DNA from: Trichosphaerium sp. ATCC 40318
Taxonomy: Eukaryota > Protista > Tubulinea
DNA length: 64,000 bases
Assembly: GCA_038496445.1 (NCBI GenBank)
Contig: JALMLS010000474.1
Location: 1 to 64,000, forward strand
Direction of reading: 5' to 3'
Positions 4,963 to 18,955 of the stretch are shown piece after piece (position 1 is the stretch's first letter; the number at the start of each line of letters is the position of its first letter). The notes beneath the pieces are model-generated. The model saw only the letters and a list, made by a program, of their open reading frames with translations, searched no databases and was not told the origin of the DNA. Position numbers and translations under genes: made by a program.

Positions 4963-6243
4963 TTAGATACTTTCATGCAATTTGATGCCTCTCCTTTTCA
5001 AAGCCTTTTTAACTGTTGCAGATTTTATACTGTGGTATAATTCTTTTAAAGCAACCAGTTTAAGTGTACCTTCGCCATTTATATTTGCACATCCTTCAAT
5101 GCTAAGCTGTTTCACACAAACAAGAGATGTAATACCAACATCCGTTATAGATGAACCTGAGATATCAATTACTGTTGCACTACCCAACCCTTTGAGTGCC
5201 TCATCTGTTATGCTTGTCTCTGCTAAATCAATGGTATGTACACCAGCTAATGCTTTGACACCTTCATCTGTTATAAGTTTACAATCCCACAACAGTATAG
5301 TGTGCACGCCTGCCAATGCCTTTAAGCCTTCATCTGTTACGCGTGTGGTTGTTAAATCAATCTCATGAACACCAGCAAAAGCTTTGATACCTTCATCTGT
5401 CACACTGGTGCTTGTTAAATTGATTGTGTGAACTCCAGCCAAAGCTTTTACACCTTCATCTGTTATTTTCTTACAACTCCATAACACAATAGTGTGTACA
5501 CCTGCTAATGACTTCAATCCTTCGTCTGTAATGTCAGTAAATGCAGCAGAGACTTTATGGACACCAGACAAAGCCCTGAATCCTTTATCAGTTATACCTC
5601 TACAATGCCTCAAGTTGATGGTGTGTACACCACCAACTTTCAAAGCCTCAAGACCGTTACTTGTTATAGCATTACAACACTTCAAGTTGATGGTGTGCAC
5701 TCCAGAAATCGCCTTCAAGCCTGCATCCGTCACATTTGGGTTGTAACTTAAATCAATCTCATGAACTCCAGACAAAGCTGAGATACCATCATCACCCACT
5801 TTCGTTTCTGATAGATAAATTGTATGTACACCAGCCAATGCCTTGATGCCTTCATTACTCACATTTGTATCTTGTAAATCGATTGATTGTACGCCTTTTA
5901 ATTGTTTTATGCCCTCGTCTGTTATTCCTTTACATTTTGAGAGCTTTATTGTCTTAACACCTTTAAGTAGCTTCAAATGATCATCATTTACAATTTCTGA
6001 GATTAAGGATAATGAGATAGTCGTATTCTGAAGTAAAGGGCTTCCAGAAAGCAACGAAATCTGGTTTTCGCTTGTAACATTGATTTGTTTGTATCCAATA
6101 TGATTATGTACGATATTATGAATAAAATGACACGTTTGAGCCGATTGTAGTGTAAAAGAGCCACATTGAAGAATATGAACTATTATTTCAACTGGCATCG
6201 CCAACAGGTTAGGTAGCTGCTGGTTTGAGTCATTAATGTTCAT
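4963..6243 (-). CDS. F-box-like + leucine-rich-repeat protein (intronless)
   Basis: 426-aa ORF with N-terminal LLAMPVEIIVHILQ (F-box-like) and about 14 21-22-aa repeats of the type LAGVHTIxLxxxx(I/V)TDEG(L/V)K. Confidence 0.85.
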   Translation of the reverse strand: MNINDSNQQLPNLLAMPVEIIVHILQCGSFTLQSAQTCHFIHNIVHNHIGYKQINVTSENQISLLSGSPLLQNTTISLSLISEIVNDDHLKLLKGVKTIKLSKCKGITDEGIKQLKGVQSIDLQDTNVSNEGIKALAGVHTIYLSETKVGDDGISALSGVHEIDLSYNPNVTDAGLKAISGVHTINLKCCNAITSNGLEALKVGGVHTINLRHCRGITDKGFRALSGVHKVSAAFTDITDEGLKSLAGVHTIVLWSCKKITDEGVKALAGVHTINLTSTSVTDEGIKAFAGVHEIDLTTTRVTDEGLKALAGVHTILLWDCKLITDEGVKALAGVHTIDLAETSITDEALKGLGSATVIDISGSSITDVGITSLVCVKQLSIEGCANINGEGTLKLVALKELYHSIKSATVKKALKRRGIKLHESI

Positions 6244-7114
6244 TTTTTGCTTGCGTGGCTTGGTTTGTTGGAGTTGAATTTCTTTGAAATAGTTACAATT
6301 ATTTCGACTTTTACAAAAAAAATAGGATGTTAGTTTTCAGAATTTTGTGTAGGCTTGTATAATGACTTTATGTCTTTGTTTACACGTAACTGCTAGGTTC
6401 GTTGTTGAGCACAAACATGAAGTTTTATGTTAGTTTACATATAAGCATACTTGTTATATACACCATTAACATACTGTTTACAATCACGTAATTGTCCTGT
6501 TGAGCTCCAAATCATGTAATCTCCTTCTTTTTTACCATCGACAAATTCACATTGCAACTGGCCAATGCTATACCACTCTTACTCTCCATGTACTCTATCA
6601 TTAAATACACAATCAGTCACAAACAGAAGAGCCACCGATTAATATGTATTTCACTACGTGTCATTGATGGCATGTGCCAGTACGTCGTTTTTCAAACATC
6701 TCAAAGCCCAACTCTTTCCCTTTTGTCACATTTTACATCTCCCTTCTAATGTATTTAAAGATGTCAGACGTTGTTTCAGTACTTCAGATGGCAGTGATAT
6801 ACCATGTGAAACATACAAGTGGTGTTGTTATTTTAAAACACTGGCCCCACCTTCAGGATCCTATAGAGTAACTTACAGGGACACGAATGTTGTTGAAATG
6901 TGTAAATATAATCAATAGGGGCAATAAAAACAAAGATATTATGCTTTCGAGTTTAGTGACTAAGTGCCTTCAAGAGTATCCTATACTCGTACATTGTACA
7001 AGTTACTTGAAAGAATATTGTTTTATTTTTGCAATCGCAATAAGAGCGTTATTAGCATAGAACAATTTGACCAAGGAGGGAATATCAAGCTACATTTGAC
7101 GAAATACTATGCTT

Positions 7115-9067
7115 TTAAAGAGTGTTGTTCTTCTTTGCTTTCATGAATTTAATACGTTCCCTCAAACTGAATCCAAGATCTATCAGCACATCTTTATCAA
7201 TTTCATCAATTGTTGCACCTGCATCGTTCATCAATTCTCCAAGTTCTTGAGCTCTTTGATTTGCGATACCCAACCTCGTCAATATTGACTTCCAATCAGT
7301 TTCAACATTTAGAACTGATTGATTCTCGTGTGGTACACCGAAATGTGACTAAACAAACGTTATTAATAACAATTATTTTATAACAAGAAAGAAGTAAAGT
7401 GTAGAGATATGTACCTTGTTGGCGTTGACAGAAACATTTGGTTTATTTAGCCATGATTGTTGATTTAAAGCGCTCATATTATCCAACGACAAAGAGCTGA
7501 TTCTGGGGTCATCTTCATCAAGCGTTGTACTATGACTGTCTAGCAATAAAACGTTGTTGACAATGTCATCTTGTGGATTATCATCTGATTCGTCACACTA
7601 GAATAATGATCAGTTGTCACGTGCATTGTTAGTTGTAAAGACGTACTTTAAAATGTTGTAATTGCTTTTGTATTTCAAGGGCTTCAAGGGCATCTTGAAT
7701 CATATCTAGATGTTCGGGAGCTTCTCCGAATTTGGTGTAATCACGTTTGGGATCAATCACAGCTTTTGATAAGTACATATCTTTTGGATCTTCTTTCAAC
7801 TTTGCTTTCATTGCTTTCATATCGCTTGTAGCATCATTGCTTCTGGCTCCGGTGCTTTGCTAGATTGTGGTTATTCAAAAATTATGTTTGGTTTTGTTTT
7901 GAAATACCTCTAAACTTGTTACTTTCGCTTGGTTTGGTGGAAGAGTTGAGGTATATTTAATACGCTAAAAAAGTTTAGCAAACAAAAAGCTCACTAAAAA
8001 ATACAGCAAAATAAAATTACCAGTTGGCGATTACTAAATGTCAATTTTTGTGGTCCTGATTCACCATAATTGTTAGAGCCACCTGTGACCAATCTACAAT
8101 CATGAGATATTGCCAAGGAATGAAATCGTATATGGGCAAACTCAAGATATTTTCCAGGTAATTTTAATGGTTTGTTTGATTTGAACGAATCAATCCATTT
8201 CCCATCACCCCATCCAAACAAACAACCTTCATCATCAATAGCGAATGATGAATAATAACCAGCATGTACAGATATGATGTTATTGAGTCCTTTGACGATA
8301 CCATGGCCATACTTGCAATCAATACCCAACCCAAGACGCCCATGCGAGTTGAGTCCGAAAGAACTTACTTGTCCTGAATTGAGGAGAACAAGCACATGCT
8401 CGACACCAATGGCAATATCAATGGCATCTGAGATGCTTGAAACACGTGAAATTGTCTTTCGTTTCAAGAATAATGATTTATCTCTTGCGTCGTCGCATGT
8501 TGTTCCCCAAAGAAAGATATGACCTGTTGATGTCATTACTCCACTTATATGTCTATTAGTTTGAATTTTCTTGACATGATCTAGACCTGGAATACGTTTT
8601 GGTGAGTTTACTTTCTTTTTGTCGAATGAATGACCCAATCCATCTTGTTCATTACATCCCCAAGAGTAGACATGACCCGATTGTAATAATGCCATACTCA
8701 CCCAAAAGGCAGAGACTTTCGTGATATTGTTGAGATTTGGAACACGTGTTGGTGACGAAACAGGTGACGCAAAGTGACCCAGACCCAATTGACCTTCTGA
8801 ATTACGCCCCCATGCATACACAATACCGTTTGAATCAAGTGCAAGGCTATGAAGGGATCCAGCAGCAATACAGACGATATTTACGAGTGACTTTATTGGT
8901 CTTGCGATAGAACTCTTTTTCTCGTCTGTGTTACCCAATTGGCGGTTATCGTTTCGTCCCCATGTGTAAACGAAGCCATCGTCTGCGATTACGATAGAAT
9001 GGTTGTAACCAGTGGCCAAACGGTTAACGTATTGTAAATTAACCGACGATGTTTGAGGTTCTGCCAT
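7115..9067 (-). CDS. RCC1/BLIP-II-type beta-propeller + linker + C-terminal SAM-like domain (paralogue 1)
   Basis: Long first exon with RCC1 repeats (AAGSLHSLALDSNGIVYAWGRNSEGQLGLG). Short introns lead to a last exon DWKSILTRLGIANQRAQELGELMNDAGATIDEIDKDVLIDLGFSLRERIKFMK; stop at 7115-7117. Confidence 0.85.
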
Positions 9068-9135
9068 ACTTGTATTACGTTGAAATACAGATCAATTCAA
9101 AGCAAGTCTGTTTTTTCGGCACACGTGACTTGTAG

Positions 9136-9308
9136 TACACCGTTTACACCAATGGGAATACTATTATCTGCAGGGGCTCTTTCCGCTATTTTCTAACTTT
9201 TAACACCAACAGAGGACTAGTAGCTCAATTAACGGCTCAGCCCAAAGTGACTTTACACATGAAAACAACTCGGAAACAACCTAAGTAATACTTCTGTCAA
9301 ACGGTGTA
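9136..9308. mobile_element. Putative MITE with TA-flanked terminal inverted repeats
   Basis: GTACACCGTTT (9135-9145) and AAACGGTGTAC (9299-9309) form a perfect 11-bp inverted repeat reading TA|CACCGTTT...AAACGGTG|TA around a non-coding interior. Confidence 0.45.
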
Positions 9309-9336
9309 CATGTATTACACTAAGGGTGTACTAAAA

Positions 9337-9529
9337 TGTCGAAAAAAAAGTCGAAAAAATGTCAAAGTGATTGAACTGTTCACCACAAAGGGAGACAACT
9401 GGGTTATGGCACTCAGTCGCCGCTAGGCTCTGCCCTCCCAAATCCCCCCTGAAAGGGGGGCTTTCTAAATAGTTCCTATGACATAATATAGGATAATTAG
9501 TGTGCTGAATTTTCGACTTTTTTTTGACA
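9337..9529. repeat. About 20-bp inverted repeat enclosing a GC-rich hairpin
   Basis: TGTCGAAAAAAAAGTCGAAAA (9337-9357) versus TTTTCGACTTTTTTTTGACA (9510-9529); internal CCCCCCT-GAA-AGGGGGG hairpin at 9444-9460. Confidence 0.55.
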
Positions 9530-10062
9530 AAGTTCTACATATTTGGGTTTCCCACACTACACTAAGCACTTTTTAACAGTGGTGTATTAATGGTAATACA
9601 TTAACTGAGAAACCTATGTTCAACTACGCAATGTCTTACTGAATGATTTGTTGTGGGCATTCAAAGAATGAAAAACGCTCTCATGCATGTAAAAAGAATG
9701 AGAAGCAGGCTGTTGGACGTTTCTACGCGTAGGTATGAAAGTATACTATTTCAATTCACTGTACTTACGCCTACAAGATAAGGAGAAATATTTAATTCAC
9801 GGTGGGAAAGTTAGCGTGCTACAGTACCGCCAGCGAGGCAGAAACAAGAAACCGATTATTATGGAGCTTTGTGGCGAAAAACTACAAAACTGCTCTTCTG
9901 TTAGGAAAGAGCTTTGAGCACCAGTTAGTAAGACAGTAGTGACACTAGAGGAGTTAGATTCAAAGTTATTGTTAGCCAAAGGAATTTTGGCGAATTTTTT
10001 TCCGTTTGAGAAATTTCAGCAATTTTTACCGTTTGTTGCGCTTTATAAGCAACAGTAAACCC

Positions 10063-13006
10063 ATGATGTATCATCTACGCAATGCTTTGGTATTTTGCGT
10101 ATTTTTAGCCTTATTGCTGGGTACTCACGCTTCTGTTTATTGTTGTTTGTTGTTAACGCTTATTAGTCGCTAATGGAGCAACTCCAAACGTGTTTTTTAA
10201 TATTACAGCGTTTGGGGATATGCCTGGGCAGAACGCGGTTCATACGGTTCCAAGCGTATCTCTAGGCACATTGAACTTCCAACAGCTATACGTACTGACT
10301 TTTGAGACAAGTAAGTGATTACAGAAACCAAACTGCGTTTTATTGCTCTTTCTCGCTTTGTCACGTACTCACTACACCTCCTAGCTGTCAACCCTACTGA
10401 AGTGTTCATGGGATCTTCTTTCTTTATTACAGAGCTTTCTGGTACGTTAACAGAGCACTGCAGCAATCACATACCTTTGCTGACGTATTGGCGACTGTTA
10501 TAGGTTTACTAGCTGAATCTAGCACTTATGGAGGTATGTTCATAAGATACGCCACGGATATGGTTATTCCCGAGTTTGATGGTGATGAATTTCCTGTTTT
10601 TTACTACTCAACATTATCATCAAAGTGGACATACCAATTTGCATACTTTGATTCAACTGTGCGTGCTTTTAAACGTTTTTATGTGTTTTTTTTTTTTTTT
10701 GAAACGAACTTGTGGTTGCATTCTCGGATGCTTGTTATTGGGTTCCGTCTAACTTTATGTTTGTGATAGATGTTGCAATTAAATACTACAAAGTACGAGT
10801 TTGATTTCACAACTAGTGCAGGAAAATTCAATGCATTTCAAGGCACGTGATTTTCATTAAAAAGACCCCAAAAACTGTTAAAACTTTGAGACTCATTGGA
10901 TACTCAATAGATGGTGATGGCTTTCTTGTGTATGTACTCACTGCCAGTACAAGTGTTTTGTATTCTGTTCCGATGCATCAACCACCTGTCCAGACATTTA
11001 ATGGTAACACTATTGATCCTGTTTTATTCTCAATCTGTGACTTTAGTGAGTGAAACCAATTTTCCTTCACAAGTGTCCTCCCTTGTACAAGTTGAACCAG
11101 GGTGCTTCGTTCAAGCAACATTCCCCGATACTAATGACCTCACCATGCACTTCTATACAAACAACTCCAGAGTACGATTGTAAACCGCATTTTTTGTTGA
11201 AGATAGTTCTGAACAGTTATTAATTGGATATTTTCGTTTAGCCATTCTCAGAAGCAGCATCAACATCTGGAGAGCCATTGCCTGGACTTGATATAGCTTT
11301 CAACAGTGAAACAAATCGTATATACACTGTTGTTAATACTAGTCCTGATAATACAGAAGAAATACAATCATACACATGTTTGAGTGACTTTAATACTGAA
11401 TCTATTGGAATGGTATCTACAGAGTTGATTAATCGCAAAGTTGTAGATGTAGGAAATTCAGCAGATTCACAATTTGTTCATATCGGGGAATTCGATACCG
11501 ATGGTATCCTTGTCTTTAGGAAAACGGATATTGATAAACCAACAATTACTGTTGGGACAAAGGTGATTACCAGAGTTGACGCTGTATTTAGTACAGATGA
11601 ATGTCGATTGATTGTTATTGTTGAAGATGATTCAACTACTGTAAACATGGCTGTTATTGATGCATCCTCTGGTATTTTCACTTGTACTTGTACGTACTTT
11701 GTTTAGACATGTACTTGATTCATTTTATCTAATGTTTTGTTTACAGTACCACCTACAACAGCTCCACCGACAACAGAAGCGCCTACGGCTCCGCCGACCA
11801 CAGCTGCACCAACCACAGCTCCACCAACCACAACTCCACCAACCACAGCTGCACCAACCACAGCTCCACCAACTACAGCTCCACCAACCACAACTCCACC
11901 AACCACAACTCCACCAACTACAACTCCACCAACAACAGCTTCACCAACAACTGAAGTACCTACTTTTCAAGAACCTACTACTGCTCCTCCACCAACATTT
12001 GCACCATCGTGCTCATCAGAAGCTAATGTACGTTACTCAAATTTATAAGGATAGGATGACTCATGCTAACATTCTTGTTTTTCCTAGATTCAACCACGAT
12101 TGGATTGTGTCATAATGAATGGACCAAGTAATTACACAGCTATTCTTGGATGGGATACTACTGTACGTTACCATGTTAAACAAGTGTACCGCTTACCAAG
12201 AGGTAGTTGTTGTCAGTTGAAATCTGTTATGGATCAAATAATATGATTACACCAACACCTTCAGATATATCAATTGTACCTATATTGTTTGAAGGAAGTG
12301 CAGCATTCTTTCCTTCAACAGAACCTCTCAGGTATAATTTCGATGGTCAAGCTTCATCTTGGACACTAGGTACTGGTGTCGTATCTTTCTCAAGTGATAG
12401 TCCAGTGTGTGACACAGATGGTGCGGATCAGAGCTAAGAGACACGCAATCCTTTTGATGTTTTGTATTTAGAGGTTACAATTGATTTTAAGCTAAATGAA
12501 CCGTTCCCTATTCCTGATAATACTCTATCAGAGATAGGAAACGAAATTGCCCAATCGTTGAATATTAGTGCTAGTAACCTTACCGTTAGTCAGAAACCTA
12601 CACCAGGTTCTAAGAGACAAACAAGTACAACTGTTTCTGTAACTATTGCAGGTTAGTTCTTTTTGTTTTTGAAGTTGAAGTCTTATTGACTTTCGTATTA
12701 GGAGGTACTGATAACAGTGCTGCAACTACTGTTGCTACATTTTTGGAAGATGAAACAGCTGTACAAAATGCAATAGACTCACTTGCAACAAACTTAAATG
12801 TGCAGGTTTCTGTACGTATTTGAATGTTGTTTTAGCACTGCCTTACAATTGACTAACTTTTTTTTTCAATATAGGCTGTTACTATTGCTGAACCTCCTAC
12901 TGTCACACGTGCTATTGATACTGATGCTGATGCACCAAGTGCATCTTATAGATTACAATTTCCTTTCATGCTTGCTTTAGTTATCATATTGTATAGCTTC
13001 GCTTGA
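10063..13006 (+). CDS. Secreted/surface glycoprotein with Pro/Thr mucin-like stalk and hydrophobic C-terminus (GPI/TM anchor)
   Basis: Signal peptide MMYHLRNALVFCVFLALLL, beta-rich exons, PPTTA repeats and terminal FPFMLALVIILYSFA*. Multiple introns, including one GC-AG. Confidence 0.7.
11750..11951 (+). repeat. 15-bp coding tandem repeat (PPTTA/PPTTT)
   Basis: About 13 units of CCACCAACCACA(G/A)CT. Confidence 0.9.
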
Positions 13007-13560
13007 TTTGTTAAAACATACATAAATAAAGAGCAAACTACAATGTTATTAACTATAACTTGTAATATGCCAAGTTCCAACAATAATGACTCTGTGGGAT
13101 TGAACAAATCTAATTTATTGATAGTTGTGTTTACAGCTTCTGGCTTTGTATTTCTATGTTATTTGTTTCTTCCAAGGTGTTTTATTGACAAGAATGAGAG
13201 TTGCTGAGGCTTTATACAAAAGAGTGACTACATCAATTAACTTTTAAACTTTGTCCTTTGATGCTAAGTTATGACCACCTGCAACCATTGTTTAGAACCT
13301 AATGCTTGTATTCTCCTTCTAGGTTAACATTCATACCTTTGTATTCTTGTTCTTATTTATCATTACATAATAACATGCTCTTCGGTATGACAAAAGGATA
13401 ACAACGGAGCATAAATATTGGTGAAAATGGCTACTTGAATCAAAAGATAGCGTTTTATTGACGTAAGAAGAACGGCCGTGAATAAACTCAAGAAAAACTG
13501 TTAATACTGTCCCCAGAATTATTTATTATCACTCTTGGTAATTGTTAATTAACAAATCAA

Positions 13561-15471
13561 TCATGTTTGATTACAAAGCACTTGATCCACTATCCCAGAC
13601 TTAGAAACTATGAAATAATGTTAGAAGATAGCAGTACTTTTGTGATTATAATTTGCGACTTACTCTTTTCAAGGAATGCATCTCCAAGCTTTGCACTACA
13701 CCCAAATTGCTTTTCACGTGTAACAAGCTTTTCTTTGCTTTGACTATCAAACAAAGGATTGACAATGAGACAGTTTATGAACAAAAACAATTGATTCTTA
13801 ATCTAGAAAAAAAATCACCTGACAAAAAAGAACATCAACTAAAACAAACCTGTGACACTTTTATCTTTGAAGATGGATCTATCCTTTCCTTGATGATAGG
13901 TATCAAGTATTTTACTATAGCTTTTGATACATGGTTAACATGTGTTCCACCATATGTAGTACGATTCAGGTTTGCAAAGGAAATATGATGGAAAACACCT
14001 GTGGTGTTTAAGGCAACACATACCTCCCATCTTTAGAAACAGTCAACACTTTTTGTAAGCAACAAGTTACCTTTTTCTTCCATCCTTCATGATAACTTCA
14101 GGGCCATAGAAAGCTTTACATTTGTGAGCGCTTTGTGTAAAGAGTCTGGCATAGTCAGCAAATGAATCAAACATAATCTCTTTTCCATTCAAGAAAACAC
14201 TGAGCTCTGAGTTGCATCCTAGTACGTCTTACTCAAACAATTCTGTGTAGCTAGTAAAATTACATACCTGCCACTTCATATACCCTAGACTTTAATATCT
14301 TTACATGATCAGCATCAAGTCCTTGGATATTGAAACGTTTGTAATCAGGTTTGAATGTAACTTTAGTGTAAGATTCTGTGCAAATTGTAATTTCAGGAAT
14401 AGTCCTATCAGCCATATTGTTCATAAAAGTTTGCTTAAATTTCCGACTTTTTGAAGTGTCCGCAGTTTCTATGGTAAATTCTGAACTACGTTGATACATG
14501 AGTATACAAACCGCTGTTAAAAAAAAACAAACAAAAAAATTTGAAAATCTTTTTGAAACATCAAGTACACGTGATGCATATTGACGAAAAAAATCCTTAT
14601 AATTCTTGTTACTACTATTGTACCTGAATATATTTGTAAGTTTTGCGCCCAGACCATGATGCCCATCTACTGAGATGTAAATTTTTTGAGATTACCAAAT
14701 GAAACAATTACAAAGAGATTCAACATTATTTTGACAAAAACTTGGTACCAGTGCCATCGAAATTTCCGCCTGTGCCCATTTTCCCAAAGATAAGTTCTGG
14801 TATATACATATTAAGTTCTCTATGCATCACAACAGGAATTCCTCAAGGTAGTGTCAAAACAAATTTAAACATTTTTGGCTATATTTTCTTTAAAAATAGT
14901 TATGTCCTTCTCCTTACCTTTGCCGTCATTCCAAATTGATATTGAAGACGTTTCTTCGTTTATTGTAACTCTAATACTTTTCACAGTATCATCACGCAGA
15001 TGATGCTCAGCTGCGTTTAAAAGAACTTCATCAAAAATCTTAATTAAACCAGGTACAAATGTAACTTTTGTTAGTTCTCCTCTAAGGGTAAAAACACAAG
15101 GTGTCAGCACAATATCAAGGTAAACATAACAAGCCCAACCAATTAAGTTACAAAAAAAGAGACCACGTGTTGAACCGTTTTCTGCGATAAAAAAAGGCGC
15201 CAAAGCCTGGTTCTCAGAAAGAGCGTAATTTGCGTTGGTTTGAAAAAGTACGACCTTGCGAAGTGGTATTTGATGGAATTATTGAACTACAGTACGTACT
15301 GTATGTTTGTGTTATCTATATCGTCTACTAGCCATAATTTATCTTCTCTTAGAGTCGTAGAGCCTTTAAAACGTTATAGTCGAGTATGTTCTGTTTTCTG
15401 TTACCTATGTACATATCCGGTCTGTGCAGCACATGCTCACGAAGATCCATCTTTGCATAACCACTTGACAT
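13561..15471 (-). CDS. Stand-alone topoisomerase II N-terminal module (GHKL ATPase + transducer), without TOPRIM or cleavage domains
   Basis: Nine exons splice in frame: MSSGYAKMDLREHVLHRPDMYIGS...FVPGLIKIFDEVLLNAAE...IWNDGKGIPV...YIPELIFG...GLGAKLTNIFS...YTKVTFKPD...RWEVCVA...GGTHVNHV...NCLIVNPLFDSQSKE...KSGIVDQVLCNQT*. TGA at 13561-13563. Confidence 0.85.
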
Positions 15472-15726
15472 TGTTTCGTTGTGAGTACAGCTATGTCTCA
15501 GCTATGTTAAGTTTACAAACACCTTAACAAGTTTAAGTCAGATACTCAGTTTGGTAGTGCACAATCACGAGATTACTTTTGGACCAACAAAGCGCACCAG
15601 TCTTGTACAGGAAAAAAAAATTGTTAGTAAAGTTGTAGATACGTTACTTCTCATTGTGTTTCTATCTTCGCAGAATCCAGAATTGTTCATTGAAATACCT
15701 TTTATTTTTGTTTGTAAGTTTGTTAA

Positions 15727-16827
15727 ATGACACGTATCTCTATCCTCGGTACTCTCGCTGTAATTTTATCACTTGTATCACTGTATAAGTGTCAGAGGCC
15801 TCCTGGATACTTGTTTGCTGAGTTATCAACAGCTACAGGTATTGTAGAAATATTCTCAACAGACTTGGCACTACAAGGTACAAATACACTTACGCTGTAC
15901 AATTAACTTGGTTTCTTTTTGTTTAGGTCTTGCGCCTCTTGGTGTAAATGCTCAGTTCGAACTTGTAAGCTCTCCTGGTTCACGTACAAGGAGGGCATCC
16001 GTGAGTATGTTTCGTTGTATCACGTGTCCATAACAAAATAATCTAATTACCGTTTCTTAGTACCTTCTATGGATGGCCAGATACTTCTCATTGTGCTTTC
16101 CCAACAGTTCGAGCCATTAAAAGTATCTGTGAGAACATTAGATAACACTGAGATTTGTTTCGCTTCAGTACCTCAACTGTCGACACATTTGCTTGCCCGC
16201 GCAGAATTTGTTTCTGAAACGGAGTTTTATGTAGCAACATCGTTGGTTATTGCAATACAGAAGTATACAATTGATATCACAAAGAATATTGATTGTATAT
16301 CTGGACCGATCCTGCCTGATTGTACAACGTCAGGAGCGCTAGGATGTGCGTCAGCTTCTTTTTTTTTGTTGCTTTTGTTTTTTTGTACCTATATTTTTCT
16401 ACAGTGATTATTGATGATGATATTACGTACTTGGGTTTTGGTAGAAGTATTCAAACAATTGAGACATCTGCTCTATTTGCAAATCCTTGTAGAACTCAAA
16501 CAGTTGCCCTAACTGATATATCTCAGTTTGCTTACAGTATTGAAAGACTAGACGAAAATACACTTCTAGCAGTAGATTCTTCTGGTGATTCTTTCACAGT
16601 AGATAAAGCTACAGGTACACTTGTTTTAAACTGTTTTGTAAAGTGATTGCTAAATACAAACCAAAGGTGATTTCGAACCGTACAATAGCGCTGCTCTCTT
16701 TAGTCCGCTTTTACAACCAATATATTACCCTGGTACTCCTAAGCCATGTATTCCCAACATTACACCAGAGATGAGTGCTACGAGGATTCAAATATTGTCC
16801 AGCAAACAGTCTTATCATAGTGGGTAA
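15727..16827 (+). CDS. Secreted protein of unknown function, tandem copy A
   Basis: Signal peptide MTRISILGTLAVILSLVSL; 5 exons with GT-AG introns; near-identical to copy B. Confidence 0.7.
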
Positions 16828-17863
16828 CTAGTTATCGTAATTGAAATAAAAAACTGAATCATCTTCAACTCATCACTCCACCAGTAGCCTAGTAGTCAAA
16901 CCACATTGTTGGAATACGCCTTTTATAAGTGGCTGTTTTTTATGACAGTATAAATAAGTATTTTACTGGCGTTTGATAAGTGAGAGGTAGTTGTTTAAGT
17001 ACGGTAGTATCGTAAAACAACATCAGCAAGTAGCAGTTCTATACAATGGCAGATTACGATTCAAAAAGTTTTTGTGTTGATTGATTGAATGTTTCAATTG
17101 ATTTATGTAATTTGTTGTATATGTACAAGAGATAACTCCAATTTAATAAATGGGAAGGGTCTCTGGCTACGTGATCCAGGGGATCGAAGCTGAGTGAGAC
17201 GTATTCTCTCCTCCAATCTGGTATTGTAGATCAACAAGAACGCGTGAATCTAACACCTCAAGAAAAATAGTTTGTCACGTACTTAGTGTACCAAATAAAA
17301 TATAATTGGTTGAAAACATGTGGTGTCAATAATCTGTGTGCGCACACGTGATTTTATTTCCTCCATAACTGACAAGATCGTCAGATCTTGTAGTTGTTGA
17401 TAGATCTTGCAAGAACTAACATAAGTTGCAAGATCTGTCGATGTGACTAAACGCGAAAACCAAAAGTCACAAACAGCTAAAAGATGGACAATAAAGTCAA
17501 CTGTACATATATAACAAGTTACCTATCTCCAATCCTTCATGATTACTTTAGGACCATAGAAAACTTTCCTTTAATTTTGTAAATGTTGCTTGGATAAATA
17601 AGGGCGCCAAAAGCTGGCCATGGTTCTCAGAGATGTCTGTGTTAAGTTTTAGACAACTTAACAATACAAGTTTTATGTCAGACTTGGTAGTACACAATCT
17701 GATTACTGTTATAGGACCAACAAAGCGCACCTGCGCTTACACAAAAAAAAAATTTGTTAGTAAAGTTGGTGATACGTTACTTCTCATTGTGTTTCTATCT
17801 TCGCAGAAGTCCAGAATTGTTCATTGAAATACCTTTTATTTTTGTTTGTAAGTTTGTTGTTAA

Positions 17864-18955
17864 ATGACACGTATCTCTATCCTCGGTACTCTCGCTGTAA
17901 TTTTATCACTTGTATCACTGTATAAGTGTCAGATACCTCCTGGATACTTGTTTGCTGAGTTATCAACAGCTACAGGTATTGTAGAAATATTCTCAATAGA
18001 CTTGGCTCTACAAGGTACAAACACACTTACGCTGTACAATTAACTTGTTTTCTTTTTGTTTAGGTCTTGCGCCTCTTGGTGTAAATGCTCAGTTCGAACT
18101 TGTAAACTCTCCTGGTTCTATAAGGAGGGTATCCGTGAGTACGTTTGTTGTATCACGTGTCCATAACAAAAGAATCTCAATACCGCTTCTTAGTGCCTTC
18201 TATGGATGGCCAGATACTTCTCATTATCCTCGCCCAACAGGATGAGCCATTAAAAGTATCTGTGAGAACATTAGATAACACTGAGATTTGTTTCGCTTCA
18301 GTACCGCAAGACTCGACATATTTATTTGCACGTTCAGAATTTGTTTCTGAAACGGAGTTTTATGTAGCAACATCGATGGTTTTTGCAATACAAAAGTATA
18401 CAATTGATATCACAAAGAATATTGATTGTATATCTGGACCGATCCTGCCTGATTGTACAACGTTAGCAACGCAAGGATGTGCGTCAGCTTCTTTTTTTTT
18501 GGTTTTTTTTTGTACCTATATTTTTCTACAGTGATTATTGATGATGATATTACGTACTTGGGTTTTAGTGATAGTATTGAAACAATTGAGACATCTGATC
18601 TATTTGCAAATCCTTGTAGAGCTGATATAGTTACCCTAACTGATCAAATTCCGGGTGATTACAATATTGAAAGACTAGATGATAATACACTTCTAGCAAT
18701 AGATTTTTCTGGTAATTCTTTCACAGTAGATAAAGCTACAGGTACACTTGTTTTAAACTGTTTTTGTAAAGTGATTGCTAAATACAAACCAAAGGTGATT
18801 TCGAACCGTACAATAGCGCTGCTCTCTTTAGTCCGGTTATACGACCAATATACTACCCTGGTAATCTTAAGCAGTGTATTCCCAACATTACACCAGAGAT
18901 GAGTGCTATGAGGATTCAAATATTGTCCAGCAAACAGTCTTATCATAGTGGGTAA
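17864..18955 (+). CDS. Secreted protein of unknown function, tandem copy B
   Basis: Same exon-intron structure as 15727-16827. Confidence 0.7.

Follow-up and report, generated by a model that had tools for sequence, protein, structure and literature searches.

An expressed gene for the free ATPase head of topoisomerase II, derived from a resident TOP2 gene, in the amoeba Trichosphaerium sp. ATCC 40318

Introduction

Can the ATPase head of topoisomerase II (Top2) be kept as a gene of its own, apart from the body that cleaves DNA? This question is raised by a gene on the minus strand of contig JALMLS010000474.1 (C168) from Trichosphaerium sp. ATCC 40318, one of 642 contigs in a 70.3-Mb assembly with a GC content of about 37% and short introns. 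The stretch analysed, 64,000 nucleotides (nt) of this contig read on the forward strand, is called the window here, and the ATPase-only Top2 gene within it is labelled T2N. A sequence-only reading of the window had described T2N as an intact spliced gene for the ATPase gate alone, and had offered a split enzyme, a stand-alone clamp, a dominant-negative or decoy, and a truncated duplicate as explanations.

We report that T2N is transcribed, spliced, maintained by purifying selection and descended from a complete TOP2 gene of the same genome. The reading that we prefer for its product, held at about even confidence, is a free head that would act in trans on the Top2 enzymes.

Results

The T2N message is short and complete

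The exons of T2N were assembled from the three-frame translation, and our own protein-to-genome spliced aligner recovers the same ten. Transcript evidence was taken from the Logan contigs of one public run (X1), which were compared with positions 13000-15800 of the window. Joints for 9/9 introns are present in these contigs, with ends CT..AC on the plus strand and hence GT..AG on the gene strand. The gene is thus transcribed and spliced as modelled, at the coordinates that had been read from the letters. All nine introns (40 to 218 nt) are canonical GT..AG, as the sequence-only reading had said of its introns, although it had counted eight of them rather than nine introns and ten exons. The model is as follows (CDS, coding sequence; aa, amino acids).

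13498..15516, minus strand: whole T2N mRNA, about 1.27 kb spliced, from pieces of transcript contigs
13561..15471, minus strand: T2N CDS from ATG to TGA, 1164 nt spliced, 387 aa, from the hand-built model and spliced alignment
15471-15405, 15363-15300, 15081-14918, 14841-14749 and 14666-14624, minus strand: T2N exons 1-5
14485-14268, 14218-14071, 14030-13850, 13802-13664 and 13607-13561, minus strand: T2N exons 6-10
13522..13527, minus strand: poly(A) signal AATAAA; the transcript contig ends 24 nt past it, where a poly(A) site is expected

The acceptor of exon 5 in the RNA is 14666, 3 nt downstream of the modelled 14669, and this removes one Val. Hence the protein has 387 aa and its ATP lid reads GTGGNFDGTDGHHGLGAK. 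The product starts with MSSGYAK.. and ends with ..KSGIVDQVLCNQT, followed by the stop codon.

Both ends of the message were located. One X1 contig carries 21 loose letters past 15516; reverse-complemented, they read as a template-switch oligo's 3' end plus GGG, and we take them to be a SMART template-switch oligo tail. Position 15516 is therefore the 5' end of the cDNA, 45 nt before the ATG. A second X1 contig follows the assembly colinearly past the stop codon as far as 13498, which puts the end of the mRNA 63 nt past the stop. The T2N message is a complete short mRNA and does not continue into further Top2 exons. Misassembly near 13560, or splicing into a full Top2, had been named as what could overturn the sequence-only reading; the colinear transcript to 13498 gives no sign of either and, together with the tblastn search described below, rules out a misassembly at 13560 and hidden downstream exons for the TOPRIM or winged-helix domain (WHD). 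Trans-splicing or an alternative 3' exon was rejected more weakly: the contigs show no loose end at exon 10, but contigs can hide rare forms.

RNA and assembly differ at six positions of the CDS (two of them silent, four leading to conservative replacements), and the 5' untranslated region has an indel of 11 nt, so the RNA of run X1 comes from another allele or strain.

T2N contains the ATPase and transducer domains and nothing of the cleavage core

T2N consists only of the GHKL ATPase and transducer of Top2, corresponding by alignment to about residues 26-416 of human TOP2A. The transducer family PF00204 (DNA_gyraseB) matches exon 8 (30.5 bits) and exon 9 (30.7 bits), in each case above its cut-off of 27, and exons 3 and 9 align to solved human and yeast Top2 ATPase domains. 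When the complete Top2 protein encoded on contig C17 was searched against the 64-kb window by tblastn, the ten T2N exons were the only matches, with nothing past residue 395. Genome scans for DNA_topoisoIV (PF00521) and TOPRIM_C (PF16898) likewise gave nothing in the window; their matches in the genome fall only on contigs C17, C22, C78 and C97. The tblastn and Pfam scans agree with the earlier statement that no TOPRIM or WHD exons follow, and the stop does lie right after the transducer helix, four residues past KSGIVDQVL. T2N has no TOPRIM (EGDSA, DxDxDG), WHD, catalytic Tyr, tower, C-gate or C-terminal domain. Because TOPRIM and the WHD with the catalytic Tyr, the tower and the C-gate are missing, T2N alone cannot be a topoisomerase. 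T2N is thus shown to be a free N-gate module that cannot cleave DNA. The parts of this module that matter below are the following.

15362..15462, minus strand: N-terminal arm and start of GHKL, residues 4-23, GYAKMDLREHVLHRPDMYIG, spanning intron 1 and nearly identical to the C17 Top2
15003..15035, minus strand: N-box FDEVLLNAAEH, residues 60-70, with catalytic Glu and Mg-binding Asn, aligning to human TOP2A 1ZXM
14831..14933, minus strand: G1 box WNDGKGIPV, residues 94-102, spanning intron 3
14641..14785, minus strand: remodelled ATP lid GKMGTGGNFDGT-DGHHGLGAK, residues 118-138, spanning intron 4, with GxGAK kept
13859..13897, minus strand: K-loop region IIKERIDPSSKIK, residues 311-323, with two Lys changed to Arg and Asp
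13725..13751, minus strand: QTK loop FDSQSKEKL, residues 344-352, with Gln and Lys kept
13561..13602, minus strand: C-terminus KSGIVDQVL, then CNQT and TGA, at the end of parent homology

The ATP site is kept while the lid and K-loop are altered

Among 51 diverse Top2 ATPase domains, 51 columns are near-invariant (at least 90% conserved), and T2N retains 49 of them. The two exceptions are residue 69, where E stands for the D of a 98%-conserved column, and residue 285, where A stands for V. No change has touched the catalytic Glu, the Mg-binding Asn, NDG, GxGAK or the QTK-loop residues Gln and Lys, and the motifs FDEVLLNA, NDGKG and SQSK are present just as they had been read from the letters.

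The ATP lid is a part of the ATP-dependent dimer surface, and it carries one of the two changes peculiar to T2N. The lid had been called rewritten and about 3 residues shorter; the first description stands, whereas the lid is in fact 5 residues shorter than that of the parent, whose DEERV is gone, and than those of all 51 references. No other sequence in the set (3 of our own and 51 references) has this deletion. Where every reference reads GG(R/K)NG or close to it, T2N reads DGHHG. The K-loop, which touches gate DNA in the holoenzyme, has lost charge, again in T2N only; the two altered Lys are 75% conserved. A shortened and rewritten lid on the dimer surface fits a specialisation for ATP-dependent pairing.

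The same lid could be read in another way, namely that its changes disabled nucleotide binding and that T2N is kept as an ATP-independent scaffold for non-enzymatic binding, for instance to DNA or chromatin proteins via the transducer. The lid is 5 residues shorter and carries three substitutions in the Gly-rich phosphate-binding stretch, as such a scaffold would allow. However, T2N has kept Glu, Asn, NDG (which binds adenine), GxGAK and the QTK-loop Gln and Lys through a synonymous divergence (dS) of about 1.5, and these residues would be purposeless without ATP chemistry. The substitutions, moreover, fall at positions whose phosphate contacts are mainly made by the main chain, as in GLHGVG of GyrB. 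We consider the scaffold improbable.

T2N is a partial duplicate of the C17 TOP2

The source of T2N was found in the same genome. The T2N protein is 65.6% identical (252/384) to the ATPase region of the complete TOP2 on contig C17, for which about 22 exons were modelled. Identity falls to 38% for the second complete TOP2, on contig C22, and none of 150 library representatives exceeds 44%. A maximum-likelihood tree places T2N and the ATPase region of C17 as sisters, with 100/99 support, inside eukaryotic Top2. The two genes have 9/9 intron positions and phases in common (phases 1, 2, 1, 1, 2, 1, 2, 0 and 1), and their exon lengths are the same or off by whole codons. A viral origin, from nucleocytoplasmic large DNA viruses, or another foreign origin is ruled out by the sister position and the nine shared introns. 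In a full-library search with exon 6 (72 aa), none of 829 matches exceeded 56% identity, versus 69% for the C17 exon, and no orthologue is on record.

The similarity has clear borders. At the DNA level T2N and C17 are 67-72% similar, with introns partly alignable, and this similarity is confined to positions 13576-15486 of the window and excludes the flanks; no flanking synteny with C17 was found. On the 3' side, homology to C17 exon 10 is clear through ..GTGCTT (C/T)GT, in which the codon after VL changed from CGT to TGT, and it fades about 50 nt past the stop. On the 5' side, the T2N ATG sits inside coding sequence homologous to C17, and C17 has an additional upstream exon. At C17:213380-213620, just before the conserved N-terminal arm and with a splice acceptor ahead, C17 encodes a basic stretch resembling a nuclear localization signal (NLS), KKATKKPPAKKRGK, which is absent in T2N. 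Because homology stops at both ends, T2N is an internal 1.9-kb fragment of TOP2 with its own start, stop and poly(A) site. T2N is thus shown to be a partial duplicate of the C17 TOP2, about 1.9 kb from the inside of the gene, beginning within the first homologous coding exon and ending within exon 10. The duplicated fragment landed beside a divergently oriented gene and there gained a start codon, a stop and a poly(A) signal.

Purifying selection acts on T2N, most strongly on the GHKL half

Between T2N and C17, nonsynonymous divergence (dN) is 0.225 and dS is 1.46, which gives a dN/dS of 0.15, an approximate value because this dS is near saturation. By part, dN/dS is 0.09 in the GHKL half and 0.28 in the transducer. 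The T2N branch is 2.75 times longer than that of C17 (0.44 vs 0.16); when dN is apportioned by this branch ratio, dN/dS on T2N alone comes to about 0.2, our own estimate assuming equal dS on both branches. The 387-codon frame is open and the splice dinucleotides are intact (18/18). When neutral evolution was simulated in sets of 2000 runs, two runs with 0.2 substitutions per site preserved an open frame, and none did with 0.4 or more. T2N is thus maintained by purifying selection, strongest on the ATP-binding GHKL half. The earlier argument that high divergence without disablement speaks for function is borne out by this selection, the retained near-invariant columns and the spliced transcript.

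Could T2N still be an expressed but functionless duplicate heading for decay? It copies only part of its parent gene, its regulatory sequence is borrowed, its rate of evolution is 2.75 times that of the parent, and the allele or strain differences are 4 replacement to 2 silent. Against decay stand the dN/dS of 0.15, a frame and 18 splice dinucleotides that remain intact where at most 0.1% of neutral simulations stay open, and the 49/51 near-invariant columns retained. A second local copy, described below, did decay, to relics of 57 and 205 nt, and it shows what decay looks like at the same locus. A functionless T2N is consequently very improbable, and the proposal of a truncated duplicate holds for the origin of T2N as a partial duplicate of C17 but not for a simple decaying copy.

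The selection pattern also bears on a decoy or sponge, in which T2N would shield the essential enzymes by absorbing molecules aimed at the ATP site or head of Top2, for instance viral factors or natural-product inhibitors from prey. In its favour are the strong conservation of the GHKL pocket (dN/dS 0.09), next to a lid whose rewriting is unique, and the drug resistance that truncated human TOP2A/90 reportedly confers (PMC9265003). However, no inhibitor or viral factor is known for this system, there is no sign of recurrent positive selection, and a decoy should mimic the lid of its target, not alter it. We regard the decoy as most improbable.

The change in the lid, the loss of charge in the K-loop and the less constrained transducer together suggest that selection preserves ATP binding and pairing, and not signalling to an attached DNA gate.

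The genome also encodes two complete Top2 enzymes and a headless paralogue

In addition to the C17 gene, a second complete TOP2 with canonical ATPase motifs and 30 modelled exons lies at C22:182960-189310. Its identity to the C17 TOP2 is only about 44%, and the two genes differ in all their intron positions; perhaps it is an organellar paralogue or one that diverged long ago. The PF00204 genome scan missed C22, but tblastn does find its ATPase domain.

A Top2 paralogue without a head was found at C97:213910-219999, at a contig end, and at C78:1-6098, at a contig start. As the two overlap with 99.87% identity over 6098 nt, they are one locus, assembled twice or as two haplotypes. EGDSA, DQDxDG and RYIF are intact in this paralogue, and TOPRIM, WHD and Tyr motifs are present. 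No ATPase or transducer was detected by Pfam and tblastn in the 10-kb loci, and a hidden Markov model of 54 ATPase domains gave E > 0.6 upstream. Read by eye, an upstream exon may be a heavily deleted GHKL remnant. In a tree of the cores, the headless protein is sister of the C17 core (Shimodaira-Hasegawa-like approximate likelihood ratio test, SH-aLRT, 95), with a branch of 1.34 vs 0.56, and several exon lengths are common to the headless gene and C17.

The relative ages of T2N and the headless gene were compared by the proportion of synonymous differences (pS). For the headless gene and C17, pS is 0.75, a saturated value (pairs of C22 and C17 give 0.78-0.82), and for T2N and C17 it is 0.65. 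The private branch of C17 after the split amounts to a share of 70% for the headless gene and 24% for T2N. Because synonymous sites are saturated for the headless gene and not for T2N, the headless gene split from C17 earlier. The two arose by separate events, the headless lineage being the older, and therefore T2N and the headless gene are not one cleanly split gene; clean fission is ruled out by synonymous divergence and branch depths. The separate TOPRIM-WHD gene for which a search had been advised thus exists, yet it is older and independently derived and not the other half of a clean fission.

Two genes with separate origins might still make one enzyme, with T2N docking non-covalently on the headless protein and restoring an ATP-gated N-gate. 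This would give a two-gene type IIA enzyme divided as topo VI is, with GHKL and transducer in one chain and TOPRIM and WHD in the other. The same genome does encode a cleavage paralogue with no detectable ATPase or transducer, and the contents are complementary: T2N stops at ..VDQVL, and homology in the headless gene resumes at ..RRVLK.., followed by TOPRIM. A selective reason for a head in trans is also at hand, since ATPase-less human TOP2B is damage-prone and the heads suppress the damage (PMC10853770). The case is, however, one of co-occurrence alone. The pS values (0.65 vs 0.75) and the branch depths do not fit one fission, and the headless gene appears to retain an internally deleted remnant exon instead of a clean break. 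At its C-terminus T2N has gained four residues but nothing that extends it for docking, the charge of its K-loop is lost, and the transducer is its less constrained half. The docking of T2N on the headless protein is thus unlikely. That the pair would form a two-gene, topo VI-like type IIA enzyme, whose detachable and regulatable head limits DNA breakage by the core, is likewise judged unlikely.

A duplicated neighbour and relics of a second copy flank T2N

On the plus strand, the gene next to T2N is tandemly duplicated, at 16069-16646 and 18145-18902 of the window, with paralogous pairs of open reading frames (ORFs; MDGQILLI..EPLKVSVRTLDNTEICFASVPQ..). The 5' flank of the first neighbour copy is the promoter region of T2N, which suggests a shared divergent promoter. 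Two pieces similar to T2N lie by the second copy.

17513..17567, minus strand: relic of 57 nt that matches the last part of T2N exon 7 (14061-14117) with 84% identity, E = 7.6e-11
17637..17834, no strand assigned: 205-nt copy, 83% identical to the T2N 5' flank (15502-15700), upstream of the second neighbour copy

They are the remnants of a second copy of T2N, nearly all of which has been deleted.

Two further ORFs were seen in the window. One, at 11737-12048 on the plus strand, encodes Pro/Thr-rich repeats (PTTAPPTT units), is mucin-like and belongs to the convergent gene, whose end is near 13006. The other, at 7994-9067 on the minus strand, is an intronless ORF of 357 aa with RCC1-like repeats by eye (..WGRNDNRQLG.., ..WGRNSEGQLG..).

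Discussion

Comparison with known systems

Isolated Top2 ATPase fragments dimerise on AMPPNP and hydrolyse ATP. The recombinant fragments of known structure (yeast 1PVG, human TOP2A 1ZXM, TOP2B 7QFN, and 7L6S) have nearly the same boundaries as T2N (about human residues 26-416 vs a 29-428 construct; the 1ZXM chain has 400 residues) and the same GHKL and transducer fold family and catalytic motifs. Unlike them, T2N is a natural, selected gene product, with a lid 5 residues shorter and a weakened K-loop. Compared with the full-length C17 Top2, T2N is a direct descendant, but without the cleavage core and the basic N-terminal stretch.

An ATPase on a polypeptide apart from the cleavage subunit, as in T2N, is also seen in Top6B/TOPOVIBL (type IIB), GyrB/ParE and phage T4 gp39, and the break between transducer and TOPRIM is that of topo VI. 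T2N, however, is type IIA by descent, whereas GyrB, ParE and gp39 additionally carry TOPRIM. T2N is also younger than its candidate partner, the headless gene, and not co-derived with it.

The closest functional analogy to T2N is human TOP2A/90. This is reported to be a natural N-terminal truncation without the active-site Tyr, made by intronic polyadenylation, which acts through the full-length enzyme, is dominant-negative and confers drug resistance (PMC9265003, PMC7304410). As an isoform, TOP2A/90 comes from the gene of the full-length enzyme, and it retains some of the core, whereas T2N is a separate gene and stops at the transducer.

An independent partial TOP2 duplicate was met in Arabidopsis arenosa/halleri, where a 642-aa 'DNA topoisomerase 2' (KAG7532729.1 and CAL9241947.1; P0142) contains HATPase_c and DNA_gyraseB with no Toprim or topoIV; its gene lies some 10 kb downstream of a complete TOP2. 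In A. thaliana x arenosa (GCA_019202795.1, CM032925.1:2052461-2078551), the full TOP2 occupies positions 5004-9974 of the locus and the partial duplicate, annotated as KAG7532729.1, 18399-21022; CAL9241947.1 is the A. halleri annotation. Unlike T2N, the Arabidopsis duplicate has an acidic C-terminal tail of 240 aa, stands in tandem with the gene it came from and is known as a gene model. Partial head duplicates may thus recur. P0039 (374 aa; Joint Genome Institute metagenome 3300051164, 1-1917) was rejected as a second natural head-only case: TOPRIM continues in another frame just past its stop, and P0039 is therefore a full Top2 with a frameshift or sequencing error. Its lid is also unusual (GAGTFGVGGK). 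In the literature we found no description of a natural head-only Top2, and where CIN-4 of C. elegans comes up, it is simply named as a second Top2 orthologue (PMC5584148).

A free head that may act in trans

We hold it about evenly probable that T2N is a dimerising clamp, gated by ATP, that works in trans on the Top2 enzymes, a proposal made from sequence. T2N would still bind ATP, and ATP binding would drive its dimerisation, like that of isolated Top2 ATPase domains. Its partner may be a second T2N, the ATPase head of a full-length Top2 or a Top2 core. In this way T2N would tune or guard Top2 activity instead of catalysing.

Several points weigh against such a role. The substitutions of G to D, R to H and N to H in the lid, together with the deletion of five residues, could weaken or abolish ATP binding. 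The high local concentration of the second head in a full-length dimer could make pairing in trans inefficient. No NLS is evident in T2N. Expression of T2N is documented by assembled contigs of a single run, the dN/dS values are approximate for the reason given above, and the allele or strain differences (4 replacement vs 2 silent) are too few to show current constraint.

Significance

Why type II topoisomerases spend ATP on reactions that are energetically downhill is a long-standing question. From an engineered headless human TOP2B it was argued that the ATPase heads restrain DNA damage, and no ATPase-less type IIA enzyme had so far been noted in genomes (PMC10853770). A single amoeba now offers four native proteins: two complete TOP2 enzymes, a headless paralogue, and a free head that is expressed and under selection. 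With a natural head and a natural body available separately, it can be asked whether the head acts in trans, whether it guards the headless core and whether it throttles the full-length enzymes, and the effect of a shortened ATP lid on gate dynamics likewise becomes accessible in natural proteins. T2N is also a clean example of a new gene that arose from an internal fragment of an essential gene and captured the promoter region of a neighbour.

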